Positions 51,801-61,959 of a stretch of 64,000 nt of DNA are shown in pieces. The DNA is taken from positions 4,340,001 through 4,404,000 of the forward strand of contig NW_026889759.1 in assembly GCF_033153115.1 (NCBI RefSeq), given 5' to 3'. The DNA is from Saccostrea echinata. Taxonomy: Eukaryota. Both the position numbers and the translations under genes were made by a program. Every line of letters begins with the position of its first letter. Position 1 is the stretch's first letter. The notes beneath the pieces are model-generated. The model worked only from the letters and a program-made list of their open reading frames with translations. It had not been told where the DNA came from and ran no database searches.

Positions 51801-54800
51801 TCTGGAAAATTTTATTATTTGATCATTTGATTATTTGAAAATAATAATGTTTTAAGCACTCATACTCTTTGTATTTATGACGGTAAGTTACTTTTATATA
51901 GTTTTGATAAATAATGCACAAAGAACCAGAATACACCGTTTCCTTACTCTCCAACTGCTATTTATATATAACAAGCATTCTGAGAGTATTGCATTAGCAA
52001 TACTAGTCCCCTACCGGCAAGTGTAATCTGGTTCCCGTTAAGAATTTAAAATGCCATAATTCCATCAAAAATCAATGAAGCGGGATGAAATACAAACTTG
52101 ATCTATAACTAATCAAGGTTAAGTCACATACCAAAAATCAACTCAATATCTAAAAGCGTTAAGAAGAAAATTGCGGAAAACCCCTAAAAATTGAAAAGGC
52201 CGTATTTCCATCAAAAATCAATGAAGCGGAACGAAATGCAAACTTGATCTGTAACTCATCAAGATACACTCACATACCAAAAATCAGCTCAATATCTGCA
52301 AGCGTTTAGGGAAAAAGTGCAGAAAACCAAGTGGGACAGACAGAGGGACAGACAGACAGACAGATGGACGGACAGACTCAGAGGAAACCTATAGTCCCCT
52401 CCGGTTTCACCGGTAGGGGACTAATAACAAACCAAGCTGCCTTAAGGCTTGAAAAAGGGTCACTGTGTAGCCGAGTTTTAAATTCATGTCTATTTTTTTT
52501 TTGCTCAACAGGCATTATACCAGAACCAGACACGGGTCAGTAAACTAAGGGACACCTCCATCCTGCCAGATCTCTGTAACAGTCACAAAAAACAGTTAGT
52601 GGTGATGGTCAACAATCACAAAAAGCTCCAGGAAACCAAGAAAAAGTGCAAGATGGCCAAGGAAGAGCTGTCTGTCAATCTTCACACAAGACTCAGGTAT
52701 TGTGTCATTTACTCCTCAAAATGAAATACTTTAAATGGAATTTCTGATTTAAGGATGGATTGGTGCAATACATGTACTTTTTTAACCACTTGTCTTCTGT
52801 ATGAGCACATTCTAGTCTACATTTGGAAAAAAAATAGAAATTATAAAGATTTCCTTGGTGAAATGAGCAAAATCTCCCTTTATTGTAGATGGGTGATGTT
52901 GGTGGAAAAGAGGATCTGTGATGTAGATGGAAAGTTGATGATTTACCATGAAAACCTTAAGCGATTAAGGAAGAGGTTGGACATTTTAAAACAGATCCAT
53001 GAAGCTCCACAAGTGTATGCTAAACTGGTGGTGGAGGTGGTTCGACGAAGGAAGTTCTCTACTCAGTTTTTAAAGGTAAAATGACAACATATGAACATTT
53101 TTAATTCAGACAAAATCAAAAGACTGATTTAAAAAGCAGTTATTTGCTTGTTGTCATCTAACACAGCATGATTTATTAAAACAAGAATTTTAAATAGTTA
53201 TAAATGCACCAGTATTGAAATCTATCTCAAGTTTATTAGTTTATACATACAACCTCCAAAAATATTGATTTGTATACATGTCTGAGTTTATTTCTCTTAT
53301 ACCCATAAATTTATATTGATATTAATCATTCTCCTTACAATCTTATTTCTCAGATGTCCAAGTCAATTCTGGATTCATTCTATAATCCTATCTTGTCAAA
53401 TGTTGCTTTTGACCAGTGTGACTCAGATTTTTTTTCATTGAACCTTTGACTGGTTGATGTTTTACACTATTCTTGCTTTGAACTGGATAGCTTCATGCAA
53501 GATTAAACTCTCAAGGTCATCATAGTTCTGAATTTGTAACAGTGCGTAGATTAAAATCACATTTGTATTCTCGCTCTGAATGAGCTTTGTTTTACCCTTT
53601 CTTAGCAACTACTCATCACAGATGCTTGAAATTTTAGCACAATCTTTGTTAAGGCAATCCATGTAATGGGATTCTTTTTTGTCTGAATCTGATGTCAACT
53701 TCCTGTTTATCCGTGCGTCTGTCTGTACTAAATTTCCGTCACAGTTTTTTCAGCAACTACTTGGTGCAGATGCTTGAAAGTTAAACACAATGTTTGTTTA
53801 GGCATGCCATATGGTGGGATTCAATTTTATATGAATTCGATGTCAACATGAGAGGGTATATTCACATCAGAGCAGGGGTATTACTAGTGAGAATTCTCTT
53901 ACAGACAAGAATTCTGTGAGAGAATTCTCACTAGTAATACCCCTGCTCACACAAGTCTTGTTTTTGACTGATGTTTATATGATGCTCAAAGTTATATCTT
54001 CAGACTCAAGGGACACATAATTCCAAAGTTAGCACTTCTACAAACAATCAATATGAGTTAAAAGTTTGCTTTTGACAAATGCTAATGTACTTCAAATAAG
54101 GGTATTTTGGATGTGGAACTTTAAAAAAAATGTATCTAATTTTCTTTAGATGGAAAAAAGCCACATATTCAAGTATCTTCATTTTAAACTACAATAATCC
54201 ATCATCTCATCTTCTTGTCTTTACAGTGGGCATCACATTTAGCAGTGGAATCACAGAATGTTCATGAAGATGAAGTAAAGAGGAGAGAATTATTCCAAAC
54301 AGAAGTTGGTAAGTACAACACAAATCATTGCAACATAGCTGAAAAATGCTGAGAAACAAATGCACTTTAGTCTAATACTCTCAAAAGTTTATTGATAACA
54401 ATTTTATCCAGTTTAAAATCATTCTCTACAACAGATACCAGTTATGCTTATGCATTTGAAAATTTCAGTTATGATAACATTTTTTTATGTAATATTCTCG
54501 CAGAATTCATAATTAAGTATTTGATACTTACAAATGTATTTCTCTTGAAGTCAAGAATACCGGTAAGTGATTTATCTGTTGTAGGTAACCATTTCCTTCA
54601 GTCACTTTTCAATGGACTGGAAGATTCTCCTGCATCTTTTGCCGTAAGTAGTGCCATAATTATTATCCCCAGTCTGATGAATGTATGTACATGTACATGT
54701 GTTTCATCAAATACATTGAATAAACGTTATCCATTTCACAGACTGAGGAACCAAAGGCATTTGATCAGAGTCTGCCACCAATTACACCTGATGATGTGAC

Positions 54801-57800
54801 CATGCTCAGAAATCAGGTTCCAGAACTTGCTCATAATCTCCAGTAAGTTATGATAATCAATATTTTGCTCTGTGTTTGCCATATCACGAAAGACATACTG
54901 GTAATGTTCAAAAACATGTACTCTTGGTAGCTTTAATTTTGCTGACTGATGTTTAAGGTATTGAGTCAATCATATTTATACTACATTTTGAGCTCAATTG
55001 TTCTACAAACTGTGAAAACAGTAGCAAAGAAACTGTTGCAAAATTACAGCTGTATACAATGTATTTGTTGTAGTACTTTCTGTTTTATATGATTGGATGA
55101 ATTCACAGATCTTTCATCTAGAGAGAGAAAGAGAGAGAGTTGATGTCATGGAACTTTCACAAAAAAATGAATTGGTTTATTTTCTTCGTAGGGTTCCTTT
55201 GGATGTGTCATTCTTAATGAAGGATGTATTCTTTGAGAGGTCATTATTCAAGTTTGGTGAAGCTGCTGCAAAGGGAGGCACTGGGCATGGATTGGCTACC
55301 TCAGACATAGAGATAATCAACAATTGTGATGAAGAAGAAACCTTTCTAACCACAGAACAAAGTCTTTCATTGGAACAGCAGGTGGCTAGCAGTGAGATGG
55401 ATCCAAATCTCCTGCTGCAGATTCAGAAGGAAAGTTGTACTGACAAACCCGAACTATTAATGCCTAAAAGTCTTTCAGAAGAACTGACAAAACAAATGAA
55501 AATTATCAGTAAAGACAAATTACCAAGTGCTACAAGTGTAGACAATTTTAACAAAACTTATCCAGGGGAAAGTGCAATAAAATGTGAGAGTAATGATAGT
55601 GCCAAAAAATCTGTGTGTGGTTTGGAAGCAACCAGTGAATCATTTGGGGCCTCAACTTCTTCAGGAGAGCAGTTAAAATCTACAGAGAGTGAACTGTCTG
55701 GACAAGACAAAACCTCCGAGAGTGTCCCATCAGGGAAGAAGAGGGTAAGGAGACAAACTGACCCAGACATGGAGACTTCACAGGAATTCACTACAGCAGA
55801 CTTCTACATTGAGGATTCCATGCCTTCTTCAATTGCTGACTCACCACCTAGTAAAGAAGACAAACCAAAAGCAAGACCATTACTCCCTGTGGAGAAATCA
55901 GAGGAAGTGAAAATATTGAAGGATAGAGTTCAAACACTGACCCAAGAACTGGAAGAGTCCAAAGGCAAAGTGGACAAATTTGTGAATTTTTCAAGGGAGG
56001 CATTAGAACTTAAGTGTGATTTGTTGCAGTTATCAACCTGTGTACGAGAAAATAAGAATGTTATGTCATCTGAAATTGCAAATACTAAAGACACATTGAA
56101 AGATAGTCTTGTTTCATTTCAACAAGATCTTGACAAAGCAAAGAGGGAGTTAGAGGAAGAGAGAGAAAAGAGTATTGAAAAAGAGGAAACTATTGCTCAG
56201 TGTTGTGAAAAAGAAAAAGTGCTCAAAAAACAAATCTCTGAAAAGGAGTCTGCAATTTCCAGCCTAAACAATGACATTGAAAATCTAAAACAGAAGGTAA
56301 TGGACTTGGAGACTAAAATTTTGAAAGAAAAGGAAAATTTTGAAAGAGAGAAACAGGAATTGGAAGAGGAACATAAAAATAAGATTGAAGAAATTAATAA
56401 AGAAAATTCTCTTGAGCTAGAAGTTGAACTGGATAAGATAAGGGCAGAGTATCAAGAACAAGTTTCAGAACTGGAAAACAAATTAATTGATCGGGAAGCT
56501 ATTGAAGCCAAACTTACTGAAAAAGTTAAAAGCTTAAGCACAGAAAAAAGTAAAGTGGAAGAAAAATTATTTTCTCAATTTCAACAGGAGAAAAATGACA
56601 TCACAAAAATACTTCAGGCTGAGTTTGAAGAAAAACTGAAAAAGGAAATGGATGAACACAGAATGTCACTGGAAGCTAAACACAGAGAGGAAACTGAGTC
56701 TATACAGAGAACACACATTGAAAGGTTAGAAAGTGAGTTGAAGGAACAAAAGGAAAAGTTGATGAAGGAAAAGGATGATGAACTAGAAGTACTGTCTCAA
56801 CAACTGAATACAGAATTTGATAAATCATATCAAGTATTAAAAGAAACCTTAGAGGAAGATCATAAGAAAGCTTTAGGAGATTTCATGTCACAAAGTGAAC
56901 AGAAGTATCAAGAAGAAAAACTCCATAATGAGGAAGTAGTAAAGAAACAAATTGATGAACTTCAATTAAAACTAAACTTATACACAGAGAAAGAGTATGA
57001 TCACAAGGAATCACAGACCGCTAGCAAGGAGAGTGTACAACAGGAAGTCCAAACAGATGTGAAAGACACAAGTCAAACAGAGATTCAAACCGAACAGTGG
57101 CAGGGAATAGAGATGAAGACACAGACAGATACTACACCCGTGACTCAACAGGAGGCTCAGACAAGCCTTCTGTGGACTGAAGGAATGGAAGTAGATACAC
57201 AGACAGAAGGGGTGACAGTGGTTCAGCAGGAGGCCCAGACTCACTTGACTATGGAGGAAGGGAAGGAGAGGAATACACAGACAGATACCCCAGTGATTGT
57301 TCAGCAAGAAATGCAAACAAGCCTCACTATGAATCCTGAAGGAATGGATATAGAAACACAAACTGAAATCAAAACTCAAATCCCTCAAGGTATACAAACA
57401 AGTGTGTGTTTGGAGAAAAGTGAGGAGGGAACTGAAATGGAAACTCAGACAGACATTAGACAAGTCCAGCAACAAGAGATTCAAACATCACTTGAGGTGA
57501 CAAATAGTAGAGCAGAGAGTGAGAAAGAAAAGGCAAATCAAGAAAAGGAGATTCAGACAAGTCTGGGTGATGGTGAGACTGTCATTAGTGCCCAAGAACA
57601 TAGCAACCAGATGGCATTTTTGCAAGTGAGGCTTACAGCTGAAAAAGATAAGGTACATTGATAACCAAATGTAGACTAATCTTAATTTTCCAAACACCAT
57701 TGTTCTAGGAATATGATATTCTCAGACATGTATTAGGAGTTTGCAAAGGAAAAGTATATTGGTTTTCGTTTACTATAAATGACTTATTTTCATGGGGTCA

Positions 57801-60800
57801 ATATTTTGGTTTGAAGAGAGAAAAAAAAAAAATTAATGTTAAATTGATTGCATGGTTGAAGGAGTGAAGAATTATTTGAAGTTTGAAATTTTAATATTCA
57901 GTGAAGGACATGAATTCATGGGTCAAACCATGAAAGCAAGGAAAATTAAATCTTTAAAATATCACATATTTCACAGGATGGATATTTTATGGGAAAATTT
58001 TGAAGTAAAAAAAATTAAAGACAATACAGTCAAACCTCGTTATCTCGAATTTGATAGGACTGAGAAAAAACCGAGATATCTGTGTTCGAGATACCGAAGT
58101 TCAACTGTATGTATATATTTTGCTGCTTAGAAAGCTGATCTTCAGAGACATGTATGATTAAACTATTTTTTTCTACAGGCTCTAATAGAATTGAAACAAA
58201 AGTATGAAAAAGACATTTCTGAACTGATTGGCAAGCTTGAAAAAGAAAAGTCAGATTCTCTAACAGCCATCCAGAATAGTTTACAGGCTGAAAAACAGGT
58301 CAACACATCCAGGATAAAATCTCTTAATTAGTGATGAAAAATCTTTCATTCAGAAATGCTTTCAGGAAGAAAGTCTTGTTTAATCGACTTACTTTTACCA
58401 ATTCCAGGTTGCCTTTAATGAAGCTGTAATCAAACTGGCTCAAGAAAAAGACAAAGTTATAGAAGATCTCAGAAATAAGGAAAAAGAGTTTCTGGAACAG
58501 CTGTCCACTGATCAAGGTATGCATATATTGTATAGATGATACTTACACTGTTAAGCATGTATTATTAGCCCATACATAAAACTTAATGAGCATTTACCTG
58601 TATGCTGGTATTTTGTAGAAACTATTCTGAAGCTGAATGAGGAAAAAAGTAAATTAGAGGACATTAAGACAAGGGCAATGTCACACCTTACAGATAAGGA
58701 AAGAGAGATAAAAGAATATAGGTTAATACTTCATCCTTCATATAAATCCTGCACTCAAACCATAATTTGTGAATTGAAACAATGCTCAGTGCTTTCAGAT
58801 TAACTTTTAAGTTTGTACTTGATTTCTCATAAATTTTGAAAGTGATAAATTATTGCATAATATTTGTCTTTCACAGTGCTGCTAAGCGTCAAATAGAGGA
58901 TGAACTAGCCATGACACGTCAACAGTTGTCTCAGTATCAGTCACAATTACAGGCCATGTCAGCTGTCTCTGTACCCTCAGTGATGGAGATTAGGTATTTT
59001 TTCTTTTTTCTACATTGTACAAGACATTTTTGAAATTTGAGTGAATTGTCATTTTTTATTTAATAAATGTGATTAATGTTTTTTGTAGTCAAACAAATGA
59101 AGCTTCCCGTATTACAACATTAGAAGATGTAAGTTTAGATGTTGGAATTATATTTATATATACTTCAAGTTTTGAGATCCTAGATTTAAAATTCAATTCC
59201 ATTCTTGTATTCAGAGAGTCATGTTTTTTTTATGACACAAATTCTGCTTACAGGAGTTAAAGAATAAATCTGAGAAGATTGTGGAATTACAGCAGAAAAT
59301 GGTAATTTCTTGACATTAATCATTGCTTATGCATGACAGTTTACAGATCATACTTGTATCTATACTTATTGTAAATATAAATATTCTTTGTAAAATCATA
59401 GGTTTGTAACTGGGAAAATATAACTATTAATGTAAAAATGTAAATGTTGGCTTTGAAATTTAATCATATCAACTAAAGAAGGTTTCATGTTATGCAATGA
59501 ATACTGTTGTCTTATATACAAATACTACATACTTATTTTTCCCTGCTAGATGGAGATGTCAATGACTGCTAGCACAAGGAATATTGCTGAAGATAAAGTA
59601 TCTATTACTAGGTCAGTGTATATATTTATACCCCCGCTCCGAAGGAGAGGGGGGTATACTGTTTTACCCTTGTGTGTCTGTCTGTCCATCTGTCTGTCTG
59701 TCCGTAACAAATTTTGGTCGCAGTTTTCTCAGCAAACTCATTGCAGATGCTTGAAATTTTAGCACACTTTTTGTTTAGGCATGCCATATGGTGGGATTCA
59801 TTTTTTACAATTCCGATGTCAACTTCCTGTTTATCTGTGCGTCTGTCCATACCATACATAACAAATTTTGGTCACAGTTTTCTTAGCAACTCATTGCAGA
59901 TGCTTGAAATTTTAGCACACTCTTTGTTTAGGCATGCCATATGGTGGGATTCATTTTTGTGCGAATCCGATGTCAACTTCTTGTTGATCGGTACGTCTGT
60001 CCCTAGCATACATAACAAATTTTGATCGCAGTTTTCTCAGCAACTACTCATCACAGATGCTTGAAATTTTAGCATACCCTTTGTTTAGGCATGCCCTATA
60101 GTGGGATTTATTTTTGTACGAATCCGATGTCAACTTCCTGTTTATCCGTACATTTTTCCGTACTTTACATAACAAATTTTGGTCACAGTTTTCTCAGCAA
60201 CTACTCATCGCAGATGCTTGAAATTTTAGCACACCCTTTGTTTAGGCATGCCATATGGTGGGATTCATTTTTGTACGAATCTGATGTCACCTTGTTGATC
60301 CGTGCGTCTGTCCGTAGCATACATAACAAATTTTGGTTGCAGTTTTCTCAGCAACTACTCATCGCAGATGCTTGAAATTTTAGCACACCCTTTGTTTAGG
60401 CATGCCATATGGTGGGATTCATTTTTGTATGAATCTGATGTCACCTTGTTGATCCGTGCGTCTGTCCATAGCATACATAACAAATTTTGGTCGCAGTTTT
60501 CTCAGCAACTACTCATCGCAGATGCTTGAAATTTTAGCACAACCTTTGTTTAGGCATGCCATACGGTGGGAATCATATTTGTATGAATCGATGTCAACTT
60601 CCTGTTTATCCGTGCATCTGTCCGTACCACACATAACAAATTTTTGTATGTGTATTCACATCAGAGCGCAGGGGTATTATTAGTGAGCACTGGCTCACAG
60701 ACTTCTTGTTTTTTATACGAATAAAAGATATTCATTCCTGTCATGCAAATAGTGTCCTGAAATTGGTGACATTGAGGCACTTGGTATATATGCATCAGCA

Positions 60801-61959
60801 AAATTTCAGTGACTCAGTATCTCATGAAAAATCTACATTGCAGTTCTTAAGGACATACGCAATATACCTTACCTACTGATAATTTTTCAAGATATTCTTA
60901 ATATAAGATTATGGTGCCATCAGATGTTCGTAGACAAAAAATCAGCATGCATTACCAGGGGTTTTGAAAAGATATCAATTAATGAAAATTCTTGTATAAT
61001 TCAAAGAAAAATATACAAAAATTACTAAACATGTATTCTAGATGTTTTGTTTATCCAAACTTGTTTTAGAAGTGTACAAAAGCATATATAGACATTAAAA
61101 TGTAGCACACAGTTCCTTTAAGTATTGGAACTCTTCAACTCCAGGGAAAGAGACAAAGTTCAAACTACGTTGCGTAGGTTCTTAAGCTTTAAGTGATAAT
61201 TTGTTTAGTTCACAGTCATAACTAAAATGATGTTCAAACAAATTGAAATGTGTGTGATAGAAAGAGAATTTATGACAGTGCACTGCAAAAGAATCATTTG
61301 CACTGACCTTTGTGTTTCCACTAGTCATTCAAGAGATATTTCCTAGGTTATCACTGTGACACCATGTCTGCATAAAACGACATGTGACACAAGTTTCAGT
61401 ATTAGAAGTCAACTATACAACAGACATATTTATAAGTGACACTAGTCCCTCCCTTATCTAATGCAAGTCCTCTTCATTTTCAGCTGTAATGTTGGAGATC
61501 TGGCACTGTTCTGTTTAGATGACAGACATGACCAGTATGTTGTGTTCACTATAGGAAGTACCCTTCACTTTCTTCATACAGACTGCCAGGAAACTCTGGG
61601 TCTTAGACCAAGTAGGTCAAAGATATATATGTAAATAACATACTACAGTCAAACTTCATTACCTCAAACTCGACAGATTTAAGATTAAATTTCAAGATAT
61701 CTTGAATAGAGTTAACAAGAATAAAAAACATAAAGAAAAAGTGGTTGGGACTGTCAACTCACCTTGGCATATCCTGGTATACCAGATATTGGTGTTCGAG
61801 ATAACAAAGTTCAACTATATTTGTCTAAATTCTTTCTTGATAAAAATGGGTTAGTTATTTGCTAATAATGATGAAACATTGTTTACAGATCCCGGTGAAA
61901 CAAAGAAATCATGGGTACTGGCAGAAATTACAGAGAAGGAGTACTGTCAGGCTAAAAAG
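48857..61959 (+). CDS. RB1CC1: RB1-inducible coiled-coil 1 / FIP200 (Atg11/Atg17-like autophagy scaffold), 3'-truncated by the window. Exons 48857-48924, 49105-49231, 49630-49711, 49801-49886, 50141-50256, 50498-50584, 51284-51398, 51548-51775, 52512-52696, 52889-53075, 54227-54308, 54585-54643, 54742-54842, 55192-57652, 58179-58298, 58408-58516, 58619-58721, 58877-58993, 59089-59128, 59254-59301, 59550-59611, 61484-61611, 61889-61959
   Basis: N-terminus MLYVFHVDTGT..VADL..QVLLISGGE..AGTDTNPIYLFSK, then LVHDQHLQQQGWAAVVANLED, LPDLCNSH and VVEVVRRRKF, a long coiled coil, and the Claw domain (VGDLALFCLDDRHDQYVVFT..LHFLH..WVLAEITEKEYCQAKK). Confidence 0.95.
49351..49460. mobile_element. 110-bp MITE
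   Basis: CACAGGGGCCAGTATCATACTTTG / CATAGTATGTTACCGGCCCCTGTG, about 24-bp TIRs. Confidence 0.7.
51970..52427 (-). mobile_element. Short HINE-type element, reverse orientation
   Basis: Hairpin GTATTGC-ATTA-GCAATAC plus TAGTCCCCTACCGG at the left; two internal units and (GACA)n; palindrome TAGTCCCCT.CCGGT..ACCGGTAGGGGACTA at the right. Confidence 0.85.
53570..53962 (+). mobile_element. Fragment of the 154-bp-unit HINE family with a fold-back 3' end
   Basis: Two units match 59625-60710. The terminal box is duplicated in inverted orientation at 53870-53948. Confidence 0.75.
57001..57565 (+). repeat. Coding repeat within RB1CC1: 15 QT motifs (5 TQT), about 25-aa di-motif period
   Basis: Read from the translation of ORF 55097-57661: alternating EGxExxTQT[DE] and QQExQTSL. 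Confidence 0.9.
58027..58107. mobile_element. Minimal 81-bp MITE, same family as 92-269
   Basis: TA|CAGTCAAACCTCGTTATCTCGAA ... TTCGAGATACCGAAGTTCAACTG|TA. Confidence 0.75.
59625..60710 (+). mobile_element. HINE-type element with six ~154-bp units
   Basis: 5' hairpin TATACCCCC..GGGGGTATA, GTCT microsatellite, units near 59743, 59896, 60053, 60210, 60364 and 60518, 3' GGGGTAT box plus GTGAGC..GCTCAC hairpin and CTTGTT end. Confidence 0.85.
60851..61181. mobile_element. Degenerate TTAA-flanked (Kolobok-like) element
   Basis: TTAA|GGACATACGCAA ... TTGCGTAGGTTC|TTAA. Confidence 0.55.
61646..61817. mobile_element. MITE, same family as 92-269
   Basis: TA|CAGTCAAACTTCATTACCTCAAA ... TTCGAGATAACAAAGTTCAACT. 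Confidence 0.65.

Follow-up and report, generated by a model that had tools for sequence, protein, structure and literature searches.

A candidate LC8-type Q-T-[D/E] motif array in the FIP200 autophagy scaffold of oysters and other bivalves

FIP200 (RB1CC1) serves autophagy initiation as its central scaffold and receives the cargo receptors of selective autophagy; the organisation of its long coiled-coil arm is still poorly understood. Series of binding sites for the LC8 (DYNLL) hub are known from several other proteins: Drosophila ASCIZ has seven and ten human ATMIN sites stand in the binder table of the LC8Pred paper, yeast Nup159 has five (PMC10046861), and KANK1 takes up 15 LC8 dimers on ~250 amino acids (aa), giving a rod of ~53 nm (10.1101/2025.07.16.665182). 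Within mammalian autophagy, AMBRA1 is reported to hold DYNLL1/2 via TQT motifs, in a link that is regulated by ULK1 (PMC2953445; summarised in PMC8526019). Here we analyse a stretch of 64,000 nucleotides from the oyster Saccostrea echinata (contig NW_026889759.1, positions 4,340,001 to 4,404,000; "the window", to which coordinates refer), in which a large exon of the FIP200 gene encodes a dense array of Q-T dipeptides (QT sites). The reading that we favour, with a confidence somewhat above even, is that LC8 (DYNLL)-type motifs have been expanded in this lineage into a multivalent array, located in a disordered spacer of ~200 aa within the coiled-coil region of FIP200, ~320 aa ahead of the Claw domain. 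The binding of LC8 and its consequence are what we infer from this array.

The array is read in frame 2 of the forward strand, in an open frame that extends from 55025 to 57658. The translation of 57001-57565 is rich in Q, T and E, and its QT dipeptides number exactly 15; their Q codons lie between 57014 and 57554, and the array as a whole spans 57014-57559 (+). In five of these sites TQT precedes D or E (MKTQTD, VDTQTE, RNTQTD, IETQTE and METQTD), and they alternate, at a spacing of 12-14 aa, with sites of the type QQE[A/M/I]QTS. With residues numbered from the Q of each site as 0, the elements are as follows.

55192..57650, + strand: large RB1CC1/FIP200 exon, encoding, besides the QT array, a disordered region and a long coiled-coil stretch of helices
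57014..57559, + strand: QT array, 15 QT in ~185 aa, predicted disordered; region of the site list and of the shuffle statistics
57101..57508, + strand: five tandem two-site units of 26-29 aa, each a TQT[D/E] site and then a QQE-x-QT-S-type site
57107..57130, + strand: TQT site 1, IEMKTQTD (-5 to +2), anchor invariant in six oysters; passes the LC8 rule expression described below
57185..57208, + strand: TQT site 2, MEVDTQTE, anchor invariant in six oysters
57263..57286, + strand: TQT site 3, KERNTQTD, anchor invariant in oysters; lies within the segment co-folded with LC8
57344..57367, + strand: TQT site 4, MDIETQTE, the most LC8-like site in the 8-mer comparison with validated binders
57431..57454, + strand: TQT site 5, TEMETQTD, anchor invariant in oysters
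57539..57562, + strand: last QT site, QEKEIQTS, positional homologue of the single QT[D/E] site in other taxa

The duplication that gave rise to the units is old, since they share just 31-59% protein and 56-72% DNA identity in pairwise comparison, and all five are found in six oyster orthologues. Because the units are so diverged, Tandem Repeats Finder reported no repeat in the array DNA beyond a 12-bp chance match, and the units are therefore defined at the protein level. The count of 15, the spacing and the tandem two-site unit had all been proposed by a first-pass annotation made from the letters of the window, and each of these points is confirmed. A search of the 923-Mb genome for a second copy or a paralogous array returned none, the array matching itself alone.

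How unusual is such a run of QT sites, given the composition of the segment? In 20,000 shuffles of the Saccostrea array's own composition, the 15 observed QT (5.3 expected, an excess of ~3x) and the five observed TQT[DE] (0.18 expected) were never reached. The reverse dipeptide TQ is not enriched by the same measure (7 observed vs 5.3 expected, p=0.26). This difference bears directly on an alternative that the first-pass annotation had raised, namely that the segment is an SQ/TQ cluster domain for the kinases ATM/ATR/DNA-PK. Numerically the Saccostrea array, with 7 TQ and 2 SQ in ~200 aa, reaches the usual density of at least 3 per 100 aa. However, in every array-bearing bivalve lineage it is QT that is enriched, 3-5x, and TQ is not, even where the linkers between sites cannot be aligned; the arrays of Potamilus and Mercenaria contain zero TQ, those of Mactra and Mya one each, and the conserved order is Q then T. 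The SQ/TQ reading therefore fails, and we regard it as scarcely credible.

Conservation among oysters points to the motifs as the constrained part of the segment. The six oyster orthologues are ~68-73% identical over the exon, and the array aligns almost without gaps. Mean pairwise identity is 0.98 for the Q and 0.87 for the T of the motifs and 0.78 for position -1; QT columns together reach 0.92, as opposed to 0.50 for linker columns (permutation p<5e-5), and outside the motifs T stands at 0.60 and Q at 0.80. Moreover, all 15 columns of the five TQT anchors are invariant (1.00). The QT residues are thus better conserved than the spacers, contrary to what would have told against the original proposal, and on the evidence of this alignment the anchors are under selection, with conservation above that of the surrounding disordered sequence.

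The taxonomic spread of the array was followed in 94 FIP200-family proteins, gathered in two homologue searches with the exon and with a full-length scallop protein as queries. At the same place in the protein, ~430-570 aa short of the C-terminus, there are arrays of 8-16 QT per 200 aa in oysters, pearl oyster, scallops, mussels, ark clam, unionids, venerids, Mactra and Mya, so that QT[D/E] arrays are present in nearly all autobranch bivalves sampled. Among the non-bivalve orthologues of this set there is no array, the maximum being 5 QT per 200 aa and the usual number 1-3. Pteriomorph FIP200 is ~150-200 aa longer than the gastropod, Octopus and Lingula proteins, in line with the insertion or expansion of a spacer.

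A single QT[D/E] site is kept at the homologous position by many other molluscs and by a brachiopod. In a C-terminal alignment the last oyster site, EIQTS (followed by 'VIS..EH'), is in register with Haliotis ESQTE, Gigantopelta ETQTD, Octopus QCQTS, ESQTD of protein P0018 and Solemya DMQTD, those of Haliotis, Gigantopelta, Octopus and Solemya all lying ~330-350 aa ahead of the C-terminus; the alignment of Lingula ESQTD is less clean. This register across taxa suggests that a single ancestral Q-T-[D/E] site was present and appears to have been expanded in bivalves.

The same evidence speaks to whether the array is merely a Q/T/E-rich low-complexity spacer, neutral or compositional in nature, which grew by tandem duplication and owes its QT to descent of the units rather than to selection. 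The five units do clearly descend from one two-site unit, a Pfam search with the whole large exon finds no family, and copy number and linkers differ widely among bivalves. Such a spacer would not, however, be expected to show the contrast between QT and linker columns given above or the lower conservation of T outside the motifs, to a lesser extent also that of non-motif Q. The Q codons of the array are moreover mixed (CAG 8, CAA 7), QT is enriched again and again in lineages whose arrays cannot otherwise be aligned, and molluscs and a brachiopod have one conserved site in common. We therefore consider a neutral origin of the QT pattern quite improbable.

Two further proteins of the set deserve mention in their own right. 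In the protobranch Solemya velum (P0032), residues 1093-1285 contain four copies of F-[S/T]-x-x-[E/D]-[V/M/I]-Q-T-[D/A] with coiled-coil-like sequence between them, a pattern that may be intermediate between one site and a dense array. The gastropod orthologue of Nucella lapillus (P0013) is without a QT array; its densest region, residues ~490-640, repeats [V/I]-Q-[S/N/C/G]-[D/E] about nine times (GVQSD, GVQNE, DVQSE, SVQCD), and these repeats recall the non-canonical LC8 motifs GIQVD and GVQCE.

We now turn to the fit between the array and what LC8 is known to bind. The published rules put Q at 0 between a mid-sized residue at -1 and T or V at +1; position +2 favours P, D or E and rejects hydrophobics, -2 accepts anything except a bulky aromatic, -3 is large and often K or R, and -4 is polar and never large and hydrophobic (PMC6607443). 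Written as a regular expression (-4 non-hydrophobic, -3 large, -2 non-aromatic, -1 T/V/I, Q, +1 T/V, +2 non-hydrophobic), these rules are satisfied by 9 of the 15 sites, among them all five TQT sites, in which -3 is large (M, V, R, I, M), -4 is polar and +2 is D or E. A logo built from 106 QT sites of 10 bivalve lineages resembles the published LC8 motif at -1, 0, +1 and +2. Position -1 is occupied by T (21), V (18), I (16), A (10), M (10), S (9) and C (7), position +2 by D (41), E (34) and S (11), position -2 by E in 40 sites (38%), and position -4 most often by Q (29), E (20) or D (12). T, V or I at -1 is found in 52% of the sites against a background of 27% (p=5e-8), and D or E at +2 in 71% against 19% (p=2e-31). 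At the level of sequence, this pair of enrichments is the LC8 signature, and the motif pattern in this sense bears out the original proposal.

The residue at +2 also suggests a different reading, since D is the commonest there: the array might consist of caspase-type sites, [I/V/T/M]-Q-T-D, at which cleavage after D would sever the Claw domain from the scaffold in apoptosis. VQTD, TQTD, IQTD and MQTD do resemble P4-P1 caspase motifs of the IETD/VEID type. Yet caspases strongly prefer D at P1, Q instead of E at P3 is atypical for them, E is nearly as common as D at +2 (34 vs 41, besides 11 S), and QTE and QTD sites are equally conserved. We think caspase cleavage very improbable as the function of the array.

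Returning to LC8, we set the sites beside the 79 validated binders and the 32 non-binders of the LC8Pred paper and compared them by eye. The best match is MDIETQTE, which is identical in 6 of 8 positions to ATMIN LDIETQTD and SDTETQTE and to dASCIZ RDIETQTP and LDMETQTE; its Ostrea counterpart, MDTETQTE, agrees with ATMIN SDTETQTE in 7 of 8. TEMETQTD shares 5 of 8 positions with the validated sites dASCIZ LDMETQTE and OFD1 CNMETQTS. E at -2, so common in the bivalve logo, is present in 13/79 binders and 1/32 non-binders and is typical of ASCIZ/ATMIN sites. The SQT, VQT and IQT anchors are likewise attested among validated binders, SQT in BSN, KIBRA, WWC3 and ASFV p54.

The partner itself is present, in that the genome encodes a canonical LC8 of 89 aa in a single exon (G000:C54:21418185-21418436, minus strand). 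Co-folding with LC8 dimers had been proposed as a check in the first-pass annotation, and we carried it out with two copies of this LC8 and two copies of the segment 57245-57352, which contains KERNTQTD and the following MQT site. The scores were 0.55, 0.55 and 0.58 (median 0.55), against 0.02 for the best of 3 controls, a result graded as 'weak support'; at least 80% of contacts are shared between the runs, with a partner pLDDT of ~51. The mark applied is reached by 51/78 solved complexes and 2/108 mismatched pairs; at a score of at most 0.60 just 5/78 solved complexes reach it, and all 4 of the 180 mismatches that passed lie in this range. The predicted assembly indicates likeness to LC8 complexes, not binding.

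Several observations weigh against LC8 as the reader of the array. At -4, four of the five TQT sites have E, a residue found there in 4/79 binders versus 4/32 non-binders, and Q, the commonest residue at this position in the bivalve logo, occurs in 0/79 binders. The acid-rich TQT peptides EEGDTQTE and EETETQTC are documented non-binders; MEVDTQTE resembles the first of them except at -5 and -3 (V vs G), and TEMETQTD is as similar to the second, with 5 of 8 identical positions, as it is to its validated counterparts. About one quarter of the bivalve sites have A, M or C at -1, residues seen there in 0/79 binders, and AQT (IRS1) and LQT (PLK1) peptides are documented non-binders. Saccostrea itself has two AQT sites and one MQT site, anchors absent from the 79 validated binders. 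Outside the oysters the residue at -3 is often small (S, G or T), and what is invariant bivalve-wide is a core of Q-T-[D/E], not the full LC8 8-mer. Nor is the array universal in bivalves, Dreissena having two sites only and the protobranch Solemya just four, widely spaced sites of the form [V/M/I]QT[D/A], ~50 aa apart. Finally, the co-fold may have passed through the model's memory of the many solved LC8-TQT complexes.

With an invariant core of just Q-T-[D/E], another reader could be the selective agent. The array would in that case be recognised by a factor other than LC8, as repeated threonine phospho-acceptor sites of an acidophilic kinase or as docking sites of an autophagy partner, and its likeness to LC8 motifs would be coincidental. 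The shortness of the core is joined here by the frequent E at -2 (38%), by the tolerance of A, M, C and S at -1, by the mismatch of -4 and -3 to the preferred LC8 residues D/S and K/R, and by the mostly SQT-anchored form of the ancestral single site; in the kinase version, E at T-3 and D or E at T+1 are common. Set against this are the enrichment of beta-branched T/V/I at -1 (p=5e-8) together with that of D/E at +2, which is exactly the LC8 signature, and the SQT anchors of the four validated LC8 binders named above; moreover, we know of no reader of Q-T-[D/E] besides LC8. We judge a different reader to be unlikely, if still to be taken seriously. As regards one particular kinase, CK2 sites were rejected because the 106-site logo is without acidic enrichment at T+3.

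Taking LC8 as the reader, then, how many of the 15 QT sites would it use? The 15 sites are real, but as a count of LC8 sites the number first proposed is overstated, given that AQT and MQT anchors are unattested and that E prevails at -4. Realistically we would expect five good and up to ~12 conceivable LC8 sites. The five invariant TQT[D/E] sites are likely the primary ones, the VQT, IQT and SQT sites could possibly serve as weaker, cooperative ones, and LC8 is probably not bound by those with AQT or MQT.

What could such an array do in FIP200? By analogy with known clients, the two grooves of an LC8 dimer would each accommodate a [T/V/I]-Q-T-[D/E] strand, one from either chain of a parallel FIP200 dimer. 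With several such LC8 dimers in register, a floppy spacer would become a duplex resembling beads on a string, as in Nup159 and KANK1. The LC8-loaded spacer would set the distance and the stiffness between the N-terminal scaffold of the ULK complex and the C-terminal, cargo-binding Claw, and the geometry of the spacer would become dependent on free LC8. The spacing of 12-14 aa leaves linkers of 4-6 residues if neighbouring sites are both used. Linkers of 6-9 residues gave homogeneous complexes of ASCIZ with LC8 (PMC10046861), and the oyster linkers are, by this analogy, close to them; the spacing also recalls that of the LC8 dimers on KANK1.

A bolder version of the LC8 reading is conceivable, which we put forward tentatively and regard as doubtful. 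FIP200 might be an ancient Lophotrochozoan LC8 client via one QT[D/E] site, and in bivalves this site might have become a zipper of 8-16 sites that forms an LC8-loaded rod tens of nm long, whose occupancy would tune the reach of the Claw and thereby selective autophagy. This version, with the same doubt, would place the single conserved QT[D/E] site at the start of the last coiled coil. If it were true, the ULK/FIP200 complex would be structurally joined to the LC8 hub in a direct way that is undescribed in any organism.

All of the above presupposes that the exon belongs to FIP200 and that the array reaches the messenger RNA. The translated exon matches, with 100% identity, residues 509-1327 of P0029, the NCBI protein 'RB1-inducible coiled-coil protein 1-like [Saccostrea echinata]' of 1630 aa, which carries precomputed PF10377 and PF04108 matches and which we used as the full-length model. 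In this protein the array occupies residues ~1104-1307, ~320 residues ahead of the C-terminus. Downstream in the window lies a further exon of the gene.

61446..61631, + strand: open frame with the Claw-domain exon of RB1CC1; a phmmer search against the PDB finds RB1CC1 Claw chains 7d0e, 6dce, 6gma and others at E=1e-10

An upstream exon at 52158-53078 gives a weak match to PF04108 (ATG17-like; E=7.7e-4) and a weak match to the N-terminal domain of human FIP200, residues 450-511. Both domains that mark membership of the RB1CC1/FIP200 family, the Claw (ATG11, PF10377) and the N-terminal ATG17-like domain (PF04108), are thus present, and the gene name given at first pass stands. A six-frame search of the genome with PF10377 found no match, because introns split the domain over exons, and a PDB sequence search with the whole large exon also returned no match. 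One candidate function related to the Claw, a pseudo-FIR that would autoinhibit it, was set aside, the array having no aromatic/hydrophobic core pattern.

GT..AG junctions joining 54842 to 55192 and 57650 to 58177 occur in spliced contigs from runs X1, X2, X3 and X7, four public runs from three studies, of which X7 is from a relative with ~91% identity. The contigs of all four cover the exon without an internal joint, and a 3061-nt contig of X2 contains the whole exon and four neighbouring exons. The window is free of N, and none of the contigs was taken to be human. It follows from these intron-skipping contigs that the exon is 55192-57650 and that the array is in the mRNA, in keeping with the expectation at first pass that it is not spliced out; the contigs show its presence in transcripts and are compatible with rare skipping isoforms.

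The same RNA data draw attention to the introns of the gene. At 59700-60700 and 57940-58136 they contain tandem units of ~150 nt with recurring open frames ('LEILAH.LFRHAIWWDSF'), over which the depth of RNA contigs ranges from hundreds to ~10,000. These introns appear to contain a highly repeated, transcribed element.

The structural setting of the array was predicted with AlphaFold2 for the exon, on an alignment of four orthologues. Residues 1-237 of the exon are predicted to be disordered, residues 238-403 and 408-598 (~360 residues) to form helices with pLDDT ~80-92, and residues 600-819, which contain the array, to be without secondary structure (pLDDT 25-37).

55904..56986, + strand: predicted long helices (coiled-coil part) directly upstream of the array (AlphaFold2)

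The array is therefore predicted to be disordered and to follow directly on ~360 helical residues, as had been supposed. Of the original placement between two coiled coils, the upstream half is supported by this prediction; a coiled coil downstream is suggested by the character of the sequence and by homology to human FIP200. The parallel FIP200 dimer on which the proposed mechanism draws would similarly follow from the homologous human protein, for which there is a solved structure of the CC-Claw dimer (6gma).

Two short elements of the exon are worth recording apart from the QT sites. The tetrapeptide W-Q-G-I at 57098-57109 stands directly after the fourth QT site, and pteriomorph FIP200s conserve a W-x-G-[V/I/L] core with QT[D/E] in front of it: oysters have QWQGV/I, Tegillarca QTDQWQGI and QTDKWEGV, Pinctada QTEVWKGL and Mytilus QTDSWVGV. 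By its sequence this core looks LIR/AIM-type (W-x-x-[LIV]), with a lead-in that is acidic or phosphorylatable. In the disordered part of the exon, the block ETSQEFTTADFYIEDSMPSS at 55772-55831 (exon residues 194-213) is invariant in five bivalve sequences and nearly unchanged in Littorina and in protein P0019, and represents a strongly conserved short motif.

Full-text literature searches found no link between FIP200 and LC8/DYNLL. An oyster autophagy survey lists RB1CC1 without mention of an array, and RB1CC1 is absent from all supplementary files of the LC8Pred paper. On the sequence evidence, FIP200 as a multivalent LC8 client is credible; binding of LC8 is plausible and would be new for this protein. 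If LC8 binds, bivalve FIP200 would be a new multivalent client, regular and conserved, in a protein where the consequences matter, and it would lend itself, as it stands in nature, to studies of how the arm's stiffness and length affect phagophore nucleation. Should LC8 prove not to bind, the deep conservation of Q-T-[D/E] would still mark a functional element in mollusc FIP200. In either case the proteins form an evolutionary series of motif-array growth, from one site in gastropods, cephalopods and brachiopods through four in a protobranch to 8-16 in other bivalves.

How does the locus compare with the systems with which we began? The FIP200 of vertebrates and other animals is encoded by the orthologous gene and shares the Claw domain, the ATG17-like N-terminal domain and the long coiled coil; outside the bivalves, however, it has at most 5 QT in any 200 aa and mostly 1-3 in the 94-protein set. 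AMBRA1 is, like FIP200, an autophagy-initiation factor with TQT motifs, but it is a different protein and belongs to the arm of the PI3K complex, and we know of no tandem LC8-site array in it. LC8 also touches autophagy through Bim-Beclin 1, but is not known to do so through FIP200.

The DID-Dyn2 complex of Nup159 and the L2 segment of KANK1 share with the oyster protein, which has its 15 QT on ~185 aa, closely spaced sites of QT type. In these two systems LC8 dimers have been shown experimentally to make two parallel chains into a rigid beads-on-a-string rod, whereas the oyster array is known from sequence. The motifs of KANK1 are mostly non-canonical and individually very weak, while the oyster array has five canonical TQT anchors.

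The closest likeness in motif is to ASCIZ/ATMIN, in which an array of the xxxETQT[D/E] type likewise lies in a disordered region and strong and weak sites are mixed, with near-identical 8-mers on the two sides (ATMIN LDIETQTD and SDTETQTE and dASCIZ LDMETQTE versus oyster MDIETQTE, MDTETQTE and TEMETQTD). ASCIZ differs in being a zinc-finger transcription factor that senses LC8 levels, without a flanking coiled coil and with short and long linkers mixed (PMC10046861). The oyster array, by contrast, lies inside a coiled-coil autophagy scaffold, has a regular spacing of 12-14 aa, and carries at -4 mostly E or Q rather than D or S.

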